Source: Pavona decussata (Eukaryota). From it: a stretch of DNA of 64,000 nucleotides. The stretch covers positions 1,612,001 to 1,676,000 of the forward strand of contig CDRNST010000436.1 in assembly GCA_977016875.1 (NCBI GenBank). Reading direction: 5' to 3'. Each line of letters opens with the position of its first letter. Positions within the stretch are counted from its first letter, which is position 1. Positions 1-61,172 of this stretch are shown here, in pieces. A program made the position numbers and the translations under genes. The notes beneath the pieces are model-generated. The model ran no database searches, was not told the DNA's origin, and saw only the letters and a list, made by a program, of their open reading frames with translations.

Positions 1-1964
1 TTGGTGTCCGCCTCTCTTCGATAGGTATCAATCTGACGCTGTGCCTCAGCGAGCTGCCCTTTGAGGCGGTCAATCTCATCATTAAGTTTATTGACAACAT
101 CAGCATGCGATTTAGCATCTTCTTCAAGCACTGCTTTCTTACTCAATGCATCACGAAGCTCAGCGTCTGCGCGCGCGAGATTCTGTCTCAGGTTCATAAC
201 CTGCTCTTCAAAATCCCTCTTTTCTTTGTCGGCGGCATCCAGAGCAGTTTCCAGGTCAGAGTTATTCTTCTGTGCGTCTATCAAATCTCGCTCAGCGTTG
301 TCCTTGTCTTCCTGAACCTGCTTAAGGTCTTCTTCCAGCTCCGCCAGTTTCTTGTTTCCATCCATCAGCTCGTCGTTCAGTTCATTCTTTTCATCTTCAA
401 GCATGTTGTTCTGAAGGTTCAGTTGTTGCACATCCTGTTCTTTCTCGTGAATATCTCCCTCAAGGCGCCGGATTGTATCTCTCAAGTCATCGATGATCTT
501 CTGTTTCCTTGCATTGTCGTTCTTCAACTTCTCGAGGTTGCGTTGTGCTTCTGCCAATTGTGTCTGCATTGCAGCGATCTCTTTTTTAAGCTGAGCAGTC
601 TTGTCCTTTTCAGCATCCAAATCTGCCCTCAGCTGAGCCTTCGCTTTGTTGGCTGCAACGAGCTGTGCTTCTAAATTCGAGTTCTTCGCTCTTAAAGCGT
701 CAATCTCTCGCTCGAGTCCATCACGTGAATTTTCACTCCTTTCCAGAGCAAGCCGCAGCTCCGAGATTTTCTTCTCCAGTGGCGCGATTCGTAACTTGAG
801 GTCGTCTCTCTCTTTGGAAGTGATGGAGTTGCGTGATTCCAGCTCGTTGACCTTGCTCTGGTGGCCTCCTACCCTGGATCGTAGTCCGTCAACCTCACTC
901 AAGTTAGAATCATGAGAGGATTGAAGCTGTACGTACTTGGTGTTGACGCTCTCGAACTCGCTCTCCAAATCATGTATACGCGTACGGCAACGCACCAATT
1001 CATTCTCCAGTTCTCTCACACGGCTGGTCATCTTACTATTCTGGCTCTCAATCGTAGCAATTCTGCTGTTTGAAATTGCAAGCTCACGTTGGAGATCTTC
1101 TTTGGTGCTTCTAAGACTGTCGATCTGGGCCTCCTGTTCAGCTTTTCGCTTTTCCGAGGAGCGGAGCTCGTTCTCGAGGTCTTTGACCTGTTTCGCCTCC
1201 ACCTCTACACGCATCGCACTCTGAGACAGGTCCTGCTGAAGCTGCTCAACTTGATCTTCTAGTGCGCCGTTCTTCTGCTCCAGGTTGCGGATCTGTCTGT
1301 TCTTTCCCTCCGCCTCATCTCGGAGTCTGTCAGCCACACGCTTGTTGTTCACAGCTTCAGCCTGTGCACCTTGCAATGCCTCTTTGCTCTTCTTCAAATC
1401 ATCTCGTAGCCTCTCCAGCTGCCTTTTAAGATCCTCACGCTGTTTCTGAGAATTCTGCAGCTGCACCTCAAACTTCTTAACCTTGAGATCGCACTCCTTC
1501 TTCGTGGCGTCCAGGTCTCGTACCGCTCGATCGTAATCGGCCTGCATCCGGGCCAGCTTTGCTTGCAGATTGTGAATTTCCTCTTGTAGCCCTTCCTTTT
1601 CGTCGGCGGAGCTCTTCAGCGTGGCTTCATACTCCGAGATCTGCGAGCTGAAGAATTCCTCCTCCATAGGAGCAGACTCCTGAACAGTTGTAACCGACTG
1701 ACTCACGACCATCTCGGACTTGAGGGTCTCCAGCTCCCGCTGTAGTGCCACCTTGTCAGCCTTGAGTGACAGGATGATGTTGTTCTTGGAGGACAGCTCA
1801 CGTTGAAGCGCTTCAAACTCTGTCTCGCGCATCAGAAGACGCTTTTTTATGGAGACAAGCTCTTCATTAAGCCTGTTCCTGTCGCTCCTGCTCTCCTGAA
1901 GCTGTTCCTCTGTCTGTCGTTTCTGGCGCTTTAAGTTCTCGATTTCCAGTCTAAGCTGTTGGAC
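1..1964 (-). CDS. Gene A, large coding exon (3' partial, runs off window): long coiled-coil protein, paralogue of gene B
   Basis: Minus-strand acceptor cttcgttttctttaag|GTC at 1965/1964. Reading frame VQQLRLEIENLKRQKRQTEEQL...IDRLKGQLAEAQRQIDTYRREADT, E/K/L/Q/R heptad-rich; both ends translated in the same frame. Presumably absent from the ORF track because it has no stop in the window. Colinear with the gene B exon. Confidence 0.9.
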
Positions 1965-2555
1965 CTTAAAGAAAACGAAGAAATAATGATAGTGAACTTG
2001 ATCAGGCTTAATTGACAAAACATCTAGGATTAGAAACCCTTTTTCCAGCACAGTGAGACAGTAATAACCTTCCAGATTATTCAAGCTAAATTGCTAACGT
2101 GTAGAGGATTTAGCACGTATATTGACGCTGTGGTCGACGGATAGACACACAGAGGTTGCGCTTCCTCCGCGGAAAAGTAGATCTGGTAGCTAATGACAGA
2201 CAGCCCGACTTTTCGTGACGTTGACTCAAATCCAGTCCCTACGAATCAGTCCATACGTTCCGCTTAATCTGGCGCTAATCTTGGTCTGGCATGGGCACCA
2301 GTTGATTGCATTTTGACTCCGCACAAAATTCCAACGCGCAATTACAGATTTCTGGTGGGCGCACGCCTTTTCGTGAGAAAAGCAATTACGCCGAGCCCTT
2401 AAAGGAAATGCATTTGAAGTACCTTTTCAGATGGCGTTTTGAGTGCTTGAAATTTTACCTGCTTTACCGATATTAAAGACAAGCTTGGAAGGGGAACGGG
2501 TGGTGGGATAACTAGGCTATATAGGTATACATTTGGACGTATACCTCCACGCTAG

Positions 2556-59600: not shown

Positions 59601-61172
59601 AACGAAAATGACGATCTCAAGGACGCCAGAAATAATGCTCAGGCTGAGAACGAAGATTTAAAAGCGGAAGTTAAAGATCTGGAGAAAGAATTACAAAAAC
59701 TAAGCAAGGAGAAAGCAGACTTGGAAAGAGAGTTAAAGAGAGCCGGTGACGCGCCCATCGTAAAGAGAAGACCTTCGCGAGATCTTTACAACGAGAAGGA
59801 GAGGAAGATCAGAGAGCTAGCAGACAAAATCTCACAGCTTGAACGGGAAATCCAGAAGGGCGGAGATGAGCTGTCATCTCTGAGAGATGAAAATGAAGAT
59901 CTCCATGCGAAGAACAAAGACCTCCGAGATGAAAACAACTACCTCCACGGCAAGTTAACCCAGATGGATAATGAAGCAAAGAGGGGCAACAAGCAAATCG
60001 AGGATCTTGAAAAGGAAAATCAGGAACTTCAAGATATGCTAGGAAGTGGAAAGGGTGGGATGGATCCCTCCAAAGAAAACGAACTGATGAGAGAGATTGA
60101 TACACTGAATGACAGGAACAACAAGCTTCAGAAATATCTGGACCAAGCCAAGAAAGACAAGAATGACTTGAAAGAACAACTGGATGAGTACAATAACAAG
60201 TTTGACGATAACAACAAGCAGTTATCTGTGCAGATTACGTCACTTTTCGGAGGTCAGAGTGACTTATACAAGAAGGAAATTGAAGAGAAAGACGACAAAA
60301 TTGACAAGCTGCAAAAGGAGAAGTTGGACTTGGCCTTTGAATTGGAACGTTTAAAAGAGGAGTGCGATGCAGACAAGTCCACCCTTTCCGACCTGCAAAA
60401 GAAAAACGATGATTTACAGAGAGACAACAACTCCCTGAAAGACGACAAGGCCAAGCTGGATAACAAGCTTATCGAAGAGATGAACTACAGCAAGGTGAAA
60501 ACTGCTGAGCTGGAAGCCGAGCAGGATATTTTGAAGGGCAAAATCAAAGATAAGGAAGACCTCGTTAAGAAGTACGAAAAGCAAGTACAACAACTCCGTG
60601 AACAGCTGGCCACCTCTGTACCCAGCGACCAAGCTTCTACCACCCTGATCGTGGAACGAAGGCCTAGCCAGCGGCAGCATAGTTTAATGCTGTCCTACCA
60701 AGAGGGTTTGATGAACAGACCCGGTGGGTTGTACCGCTCCGTGAGCGAAACAAGTCTGCCTAATGGAGACGTCTCCAAATCGAGCGACAAATTGGACCAC
60801 TCTGAATTGGGCGAGGTCCTGAGTAAAGAGCTTTCCAGTGGCAGAGGAAGGAAGTCCAATGCTTCTGCTGGTAGAGACCACGTTGGCGAGAAGATAGAAG
60901 CCGCTGAAACGAAACGTACAGAGTCCGAACCGGACTATTCCAGCGTGTTTCGAAGCAGCACACCGATTGAAGAAGTAGAAAAAAAGGGTGGAAGTGGAGA
61001 TTCAGGTAGCAGCCGCTACGGTTCAGGAAGAGACCGAGACACGACTCGAGACAGAGGTAGTCGCTACCGAGACAGGGACACTGACAGCACCAGGGACCGT
61101 GACAGGAGAACGTCGGCAGCAGATAAGGAAAAGGGCAAGGATCGCAGCAGAGCTGAATGCCAGCAAAGCTAG
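53617..61172 (+). CDS. Gene C 7.6-kb terminal exon: coiled-coil rod, R/D/S-rich tail, C-terminal CaaX (whole protein ~2848 aa)
   Basis: ttattatag|GC completes a phase-1 Gly codon, in frame with the 2513-aa ORF; ends RSRAECQQS*. Confidence 0.93.

Follow-up and report, generated by a model that had tools for sequence, protein, structure and literature searches.

Giant coiled-coil genes of the window

The stretch of DNA analyzed here, referred to as the window, comprises 64,000 nucleotides (nt) of the coral Pavona decussata (contig CDRNST010000436.1, positions 1,612,001 to 1,676,000 of the forward strand), and coordinates are those of the window unless a contig is named. It carries three genes, designated A, B and C, whose products are giant coiled-coil rods of a single family. 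Six-frame analysis of the window revealed three giant stop-free frames, at 3..2093 on the minus strand (A) and at 18091..29208 (B) and 53598..61169 (C) on the plus strand, and the coding strand is purine-rich exactly over these spans. Hydrophobic residues recur in all three with a strong periodicity of 3.5/7 residues, the phase of which is kept across thousands of residues, and the proline content of the rods is 0.6–1.3%. The original prediction, made from the letters of the DNA alone, had described these exons as nearly pure heptad sequence and the products as rods of 300–430 kDa; the former is borne out by the periodicity and the latter by masses of 327 kDa (A), 438 kDa (B) and 331 kDa (C).

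In each gene the initiator ATG is preceded by a splice acceptor at a distance of 27–78 nt, as had been proposed for an acceptor of the untranslated region (UTR), and that of gene C is proven by RNA. The head exons, whose expected richness in Ser, Thr and Arg was found in A, B and C, close with phase-0 donors at positions 5626, 11157 and 48492, respectively; across the family the heads are 67–115 residues long. All three proteins also share a hinge motif, [VI]x[VT][VQE]...(A)P(P)..F..[DE], in which AP(P) separates a beta-prone stretch from the aromatic-acidic patch that comes after it. The strict form of this pattern, which was written after the motif had been seen, is matched once in A, once in B and four times in C, compared with ~0.01 copies per shuffled protein, so that the common hinge claimed at the outset is indeed present.

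Database searches were run one exon at a time. Scans of A, B and C against Pfam returned generic coiled-coil families only (ATG16, crescentin rod, CENP-F leucine zipper, Fez1 and tropomyosin), with Filament below its threshold. The same scans found no motor, calponin-homology (CH), spectrin, GRIP or lamin-tail (LTD) domain in the family exons, the first four of which had been predicted to be missing, and no Pfam family at all in the heads and tails of the family proteins. A further ten open reading frames (ORFs) of the window gave no Pfam match. Taken as a whole, the original prediction was largely right, A, B and C being real giant coiled-coil genes without a globular domain, but wrong on the exon plan of C and on the number of genes, and its C-terminal motif is borne out for C only.

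Two assembly gaps fall within the span of gene C and the domain matches are generic only, and it might be argued on these grounds that the long frames are non-functional, i.e., chance frames in low-complexity DNA, pseudogenes or artefacts of assembly. This explanation is already refuted and retains practically no probability. Transcripts spliced at GT..AG introns occur in four runs from four studies, frames of 2500–3700 codons are free of stops, and orthologues that are 62–84% identical have conserved ends and are found at full length on contigs of ~8–10 kb in many samples.

Transcript structure of gene C

The sequencing runs that contain sequence of this locus behave as RNA, in that their contigs skip GT..AG introns. 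In gene C the contigs join 48492 to 51801 and 51926 to 52402 in four runs from four studies, and 52921 to 53617 in three of these four. The coding exons are 48148–48492, 51801–51926, 52402–52921 and 53617–61169, with intron phases of 0, 0 and 1, and the product of 2848 amino acids (331 kDa) is translated without stops. The plan suggested for all three genes, i.e., a head, one phase-0 intron and a giant exon, does not hold for C, where the RNA contigs define four coding exons and a 5'UTR exon. Upstream of 48070, the letters of the contigs match positions 44759–44788 uniquely, and a GT follows directly; a 5'UTR exon of C thus ends at 44788. Because the transcripts splice over the introns that hold both assembly gaps, no coding sequence of gene C is hidden or broken by them. 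B and C are present in the same whole-animal RNA libraries; both genes are transcribed, and the splicing of C is proven. The features of gene C are as follows.

44655..44788, plus strand: 5'UTR exon with a firm end at 44788 and a start that is only a lower bound, from a contig overhang of 134 nt
47573..48026, no strand: assembly gap within the 5'UTR intron
48070..48492, plus strand: first coding exon, ATG at 48148, 115 codons, phase-0 donor; joint 48492>51801 in four runs
51801..51926, plus strand: exon of 42 codons, overlooked in the original prediction; joints on both sides in four runs
52091..52299, no strand: assembly gap within the intron 51927–52401; contigs of four runs join 51926 to 52402, in frame
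52402..52921, plus strand: third coding exon, phase-1 end; carries hinge 1 at 52783–52845 (VNVVEIEPILESPPPGFSFGD)
53617..61172, plus strand: giant exon including the stop; joint 52921>53617 in three runs; RNA contigs of 7.6–7.9 kb
59295..59354, plus strand: hinge 5 (ISVQTVAEVENAPPMFFDDD), more strongly conserved than the other hinge copies
60606..61169, plus strand: tail of 188 residues, basic, with a conserved GLMNRxGGLYRS block and a basic cluster
61158..61169, plus strand: C-terminal CQQS, a CaaX-like box kept as C(K/Q)Q(N/S) in orthologues

Inside the first coding intron of C, at 48800–50030, many short RNA contigs with loose ends and multiple placements are piled up at high depth. This pile-up resembles a repeat that is transcribed, or pieces of transposons, more than it does an exon of gene C.

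Structure of genes A and B

Gene A extends beyond the window. In the genome sequence fetched to the left, its giant exon continues ~4.6 kb past the start of the window, for a total of 2195 amino acids, and a last exon of 555 amino acids lies 3' of it; the donor and acceptor of this 3' intron were located. The whole protein has 2830 residues. The junction 5626>1964 and the UTR exons of A are predicted from sequence.

1..1964, minus strand: right-hand part of the giant exon; open frame, acceptor TTTAAG/GTC at 1964, 31% identity to B from residue 1
1647..1697, minus strand: hinge 1 (VTTVQESAPMEEEFF), aligned with hinge 1 of B
5626..5892, minus strand: head exon, acceptor 5892/5893, ATG 5865 (27 nt), 80 codons, GT donor after 5626, phase 0; matches the head profile described below

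The next gene past A, ~18 kb to the left of the window, is an ORF of 444 amino acids on the minus strand (G000:C436:1593932-1595263, locus L005) with an EF-hand-like motif at its end (DADKDGEIDYSEF); it is unrelated to the family.

In gene B the junction 11157>18211 is predicted from the paralogues A, D and E (see below), and the UTR exons are likewise predicted; 86% of the words sampled from positions 18211–24210 are contained in the RNA libraries.

10804..11157, plus strand: head exon, acceptor 10803/10804, ATG 10882, 92 codons, GT donor after 11157, phase 0; matches the head profile
18211..29211, plus strand: giant exon, preceded by a splice acceptor, of 3666 codons plus the stop; with the head, 3758 residues and 438 kDa
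18481..18525, plus strand: hinge 1 (VSQVQVLESSPDDMEMSF), by alignment with A
25117..25176, plus strand: distal hinge (IAVERVSTVEAAAPDMFSAD), aligned with the distal hinges of A, C and D
25882..28164, plus strand: internal repeats in units of ~115 residues, 34–48% identical, absent from A and C
28165..29208, plus strand: tail of 348 residues, basic (pI 9.6), 27% Ser plus Thr, 12 SP/TP dipeptides

The extra length of B is due to these internal repeats. Its tail, in which the Pfam scan found no family, includes short beta-prone TxTxK/R motifs, e.g., TVTTKITR and QTVETKFTR. Both B and C had been expected to end in a tail with a C-terminal motif; this is borne out for C, where the motif is conserved in orthologues, a conserved motif being seen in C only. 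The start-codon exon of B also contains an upstream ORF of 12 codons (10827–10865) that is out of frame with the main ATG. The distance from acceptor to ATG is 78 nt in both B (10804–10881) and C (48070–48147), which may go back to a common ancestor or be coincidental.

A family of collinear paralogues

The giant exons of A and B, which lie head to head, can be aligned from residue 1 with 31% identity over 660 residues, and the intron that precedes them has the same position. Further members were found by a whole-genome search with the first 650 residues of B.

Gene D, G000:C436:3381601-3391757 (locus L016): giant exon of 3109 amino acids, with a head like those of A, B and E
Gene E, minus strand, in tail-to-tail arrangement with C immediately past the right end of the window (window 64001–77350; G000:C436:1678062-1689353, loci L007/L008): head exon, second exon (frame of 176 amino acids) and giant exon of 2620 amino acids, interrupted by an intron at a place that is intron-free in A and B
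Gene F, C436:3108735-3116183: open frame of 2494 amino acids, orthologue of LOC144663360 of Oculina
Gene G, on another contig, C50:1914993-1929282: at least three large exons

D and F share the contig of the window, at a distance of 1.45–1.7 Mb, and no head exon was found for F or G. What had been described as a cluster of three genes consequently includes at least four, with E adjoining the right end of the window. Beside F, on the minus strand at G000:C436:3118318-3123000 (loci L011/L012), there is a tandem of at least four ORFs for trypsin-like serine proteases (IVGGNEARPNSWPWQV...).

Four signatures distinguish the family from coiled-coil noise, i.e., the head helix, the hinge motif, conserved islands and a core of fixed length. 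The helix encoded by the head exon, AKETFxxLExAYRxF...VKxEH, is aligned in A, B, D and E, in all of which it ends at the same phase-0 intron, and is found in a looser form in the first part of the longer exon of C. A profile of this helix matched five places only in the 602 Mb of the genome, namely A, B, C, D and E. The hinges of A, B, C and D coincide in the alignment, C having three further copies, and those of C are conserved in its orthologues. The rods of A, B, C, D and F are collinear and have islands in common, among them KKYxELExxYxxxLxEKE and LEQELQSAKNKIxRLE. The length of the core between two landmarks is 1902 residues in A, 1911 in B, 1904 in C, 1920 in D and 1904 in F; just 110 of the 1953 columns of the five-way alignment are gapped, at 25–33% identity, and pairs of paralogues show near-gapless matches of 632–634 residues. 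If it were a continuous coiled coil, a core of ~1905 residues would be ~283 nm long, the whole rods having 2200–3300 amino acids. In addition, basic residues recur every 14 residues in D and E, with a spectral power of 31 and 19, respectively, against ~7 expected for the maximum; the signal is weak in A.

Two candidate functions were considered for the hinge itself. A binding site for LC8, the dynein light chain, in the beta-prone half (IQV or VQT in some copies) was rejected as a general reading, the Gln being unconserved across hinges and orthologues. FFAT-like, FxFG and AP2 motifs were rejected for the aromatic-acidic half, with fits to single copies only.

The proposal that these genes form one family is upheld by the alignment of A and B from the start of their giant exons, by their shared intron position and by the collinearity of five paralogues over ~1900 residues. 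On the strength of these alignments, A, B and C are true paralogues and not chance coiled coils. The paralogues arose by old duplications, one of which was inverted and gave rise to the head-to-head pair A/B. The family as delimited from sequence consists of giant coiled-coil rods of the two-stranded type, with A, B and C in the window, E adjoining it and at least three more members (D, F and G).

Orthologues, synteny and taxonomic range

Each of six paralogues has orthologues in stony corals, the sources named including Oculina patagonica, Desmophyllum pertusum and Pocillopora verrucosa. Amino acid identities are 65–78% for A, 78–81% for B, 62–68% for C, 74–84% for D, 64–74% for E (P0001, P0003 and P0009) and 68–71% for F. 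The orthologues of C are 2811–2851 residues long and are encoded on contigs of ~10 kb. For G, the protein P0013, present in ENA and in Logan contigs, is 100% identical to the first exon over 1320 residues. The tail-to-tail pair of C and E recurs in Desmophyllum (OS493_028716 and OS493_028718) and on a contig in ENA that belongs to another species, so that two other corals share this neighbourhood.

In the sea anemone Actinostola, the head recurs in one protein (P0020) and the hinge in another (P0014). P0014 branches within the C clade with a support of 100/100, from which it follows that the C lineage predates the split between sea anemones and stony corals.

In an exhaustive HMMER search across 1.84 billion representatives, no more than 26 proteins fell below 1e-30. 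Those among them that were checked by BLAST or by name are members of the family or fragments thereof, except for a chytrid protein (P0019) matched in its interior; the weaker HMMER matches fall at arbitrary internal positions, and none outside the family is in register. A feature search of the ESM Atlas with B returned generic coiled-coil clusters only (GCC2, HMMR, plectin, TPR and CEP250), with low recognition. Word-indexed protein searches gave few matches, and a query with P0020 returned itself alone, but given the length and word filters little weight attaches to such blanks; an exact look-up of P0005 of Oculina came back empty. No orthology to rootletin, CENP-F, golgins, myosin or intermediate filament (IF) proteins was found in the Pfam and profile searches; clean orthology to known proteins such as the first three had been named beforehand as a finding that would speak against the proposal. 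As far as the databases show, and judging by sequence matches, the family is confined to hexacorals, i.e., stony corals and sea anemones.

The literature on anthozoan coiled-coil or ‘cingulin-like’ genes yielded nothing on this family, and a paper on the apical organ of Nematostella names conserved CCDC genes only. Proteins with long coiled coils resist classification and, as a rule, are dismissed as ‘myosin-like’ or ‘hypothetical’. The predicted mislabelling by automated annotation has in fact taken place, a Pocillopora member (XP_058971170.1) having been named ‘cingulin-like’. The family is real and unstudied, and it is old, multi-copy, syntenic and expressed.

The C-terminus of the C-type proteins

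The sequence C(K/Q)Q(N/S) is found at the extreme C-terminus, after a basic cluster, in nine of the ten database orthologues of C and in the syntenic neighbour at locus L001; the single orthologue that does not have it looks like a truncated gene model. This end is likely a non-canonical CaaX box of the CKQX class of farnesyltransferase (FTase) substrates, and C is predicted to be farnesylated. The CKQQ/CKQS proteins LKB1, NAP1L1, Pex19 and Nap1 are farnesylated, and a Ydj1-CKQN reporter was 88% prenylated by yeast FTase (PMC10320760). The conserved CKQN-type end is a cheap and direct experimental handle, open to prenylation assays and to inhibitors of FTase.

Proposed assembly and its alternatives

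Rod length has been held within 1% at 25–30% identity since before the anemone/coral split, which suggests a structural constraint, for example packing in register or function as a ruler. The fixed core length and the aligned hinges are the best argument that the sequences offer for packing in register, to which the 14-residue charge period (strong in D and E, weak in A) makes a small contribution.

In the mechanism that we propose, the chains would form long parallel dimers of ~330–490 nm. Such dimers may pack in register, homotypically or between paralogues of equal length, into fibres or into a lamina or layer. Phosphorylation of the ends could tune this assembly, for which the tail of B would offer its 12 SP/TP sites. 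The C-type chain, if farnesylated at its C(K/Q)Q(N/S) end, would attach either the assembly or, acting as a tether, only itself to a membrane. We consider the reading as fibre and membrane anchor, its demonstrated parts included, to be evenly balanced between right and wrong. For the rods of the family at large, we infer that co-assembly into filaments is possible and that the genes may be co-regulated. As regards interpretation, the original prediction was correct on a single paralogous family with no known orthology and on mislabelling, but not on the extent of three genes, the cluster being larger; the neighbourhood of C and E is conserved. If fibres or a lamina are formed, they would represent a cytoskeletal element specific to cnidarians and a marker for the cell type that makes it.

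The main rival, which we regard as somewhat unlikely and yet worth serious attention, is that the paralogues are independent long tethers or scaffolds. Each would then be a spacer of several hundred nanometres, similar to a golgin or to CENP-F at the kinetochore corona or nuclear envelope, with C anchored by a farnesyl group and with length serving as a ruler. Several observations weigh against the fibre reading, and part of them favour tethers outright. The CaaX-like end is confined to C-type members and the tails differ among paralogues; the 14-residue charge period, and with it any long-range charge periodicity, is absent from B, C and F; golgin-like hinges would give a tether flexibility; and the near-constant core length, the aligned hinges and the IF-like ends rich in Ser, Thr, Arg and SP fit independent tethers or a molecular ruler equally well. 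E, F and G contain no match to the strict hinge pattern. The reporter evidence for prenylation concerns CKQN and the yeast FTase, whereas C of the window ends in CQQS and would need a cnidarian FTase. Finally, the hexacoral limit depends on databases whose family entries mostly lack an organism name, and the range is accordingly a lower bound. Against tethers, the Pfam scans found no GRIP, GRAB or ALPS motif, C-terminal transmembrane anchor or known targeting domain, and the tails are hydrophilic. Core length and hinge register are strictly kept at 25–30% identity, a degree of conservation that unrelated tethers would not need, and the ends rich in Ser, Thr and Arg resemble those of IF proteins. 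Should the proteins be ordinary tethers, several hundred kilobases of coding DNA in corals would still be annotated more cleanly.

The fibre reading in its most complete form would posit a cytoskeletal or membrane-skeleton system of the hexacorals' own. In it, hinged rods of equal length (~1905 residues, ~283 nm) would be co-assembled in register, and a farnesylated C-type chain would fasten them to the nuclear envelope or plasma membrane. This combination of steps is a long shot.

Comparison with known systems

CENP-F is similar in being giant (~3000 amino acids), almost purely coiled-coil and motor-less. The C-terminal farnesylation boxes of CENP-F and CENP-E have polar residues at a1 and a2 (CKVQ and CKTQ), and the ends CKQN, CQQS and CQQN of the C-type proteins are reminiscent of them. 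It might therefore be supposed that the family is not lineage-specific and consists of fast-evolving orthologues of CENP-F/LEK1, rootletin/C-Nap1, cingulin or a golgin that were duplicated in corals. Three observations could be cited in support, namely a whole-protein score above the cut-off for PF10473 in A, B, C and D, the farnesylation-type end of C, and the NCBI label ‘cingulin-like’ on one member. Two to three stretches pass the PF10473 cut-off individually in B and C, but none does so in A and D, where the score is consequently a sum of weak stretches, and the generic families ATG16, crescentin rod, tropomyosin and Fez1 score beside it in all four proteins. The Pfam scans found no CENP-F_N domain (PF10481) in the family heads, and the matches to it in the genome, on contigs C46, C204 and C25, are away from all family loci, as are those to the rootletin N-terminal domain on C191. 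Together with heads and tails that match no Pfam family and an exhaustive profile search that gave no in-register match outside the family, these results make hidden orthology improbable. The family further differs from CENP-F in having no Rb-binding domain, and neither the head helix nor the hinge is a feature of CENP-F. A farnesylation box of the CENP-F type, as predicted from the sequence, is restricted to one subfamily, the C-type members.

Rootletin (CROCC) and C-Nap1 (CEP250) are likewise paralogous rods, of 2000–2400 amino acids, that form or anchor fibres and have no motor. The Rootletin domain (PF15035) had no match in A, B or C, and there is no in-register similarity. The golgins giantin, golgin-245 and GCC185 resemble the family in their very long coiled coils, short hinges and, as predicted for C, C-terminal anchoring to membranes; they differ in the nature of the anchor, which in the family would be a prenyl group and not a transmembrane helix or a GRIP/GRAB domain. 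Cingulin, a protein of ~1200 amino acids with a large ZO-1-binding head, shares the organization of head, coiled-coil rod and tail; nothing specific was matched, and the name given to the Pocillopora member comes from automated annotation.

The likeness to myosin II and paramyosin lies in a long unbroken heptad phase, a conserved rod length and the 14-residue charge period of D, E and, weakly, A, a period by which staggered packing could be driven. The scanned family exons contain no motor domain and no light-chain sites. Myosin_tail_1 had no match at E<=0.01 in B and C or at E<=1e-5 in D, E and the rest of A, and for the part of A within the window this negative covers the best 25 of 31 families. 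The 28 and 28/3 charge periodicity typical of myosin was looked for and not seen in the family rods. Pfam likewise gave no match to the spectrin repeats or CH domains of spectrin, plakin and calponin-homology scaffolds.

With IF proteins and lamins, the family has in common a head rich in Ser, Thr and Arg, a heptad rod of conserved length and a basic tail rich in Ser and Thr. The tails of neurofilament proteins are rich in SP, as is that of B, and gene C approaches the lamins in the basic cluster that follows the rod and in its CaaX end. The differences are a rod ~6–10 times longer, no sign of the end motifs LNDR or TYRKLLEGE, and no lamin tail (Ig-like) domain, the tails of B and C being without any Pfam family; the best scores of family members with Filament (PF00038), a rod domain of ~310 amino acids with conserved end motifs, are 22.9–37.8 bits, below the cut-off of 40. 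If a hexacoral system of co-assembled rods does exist, it would constitute a filament class analogous to the lamins and IF proteins, with a rod ~6–10 times as long, and may underlie a cell structure specific to hexacorals.

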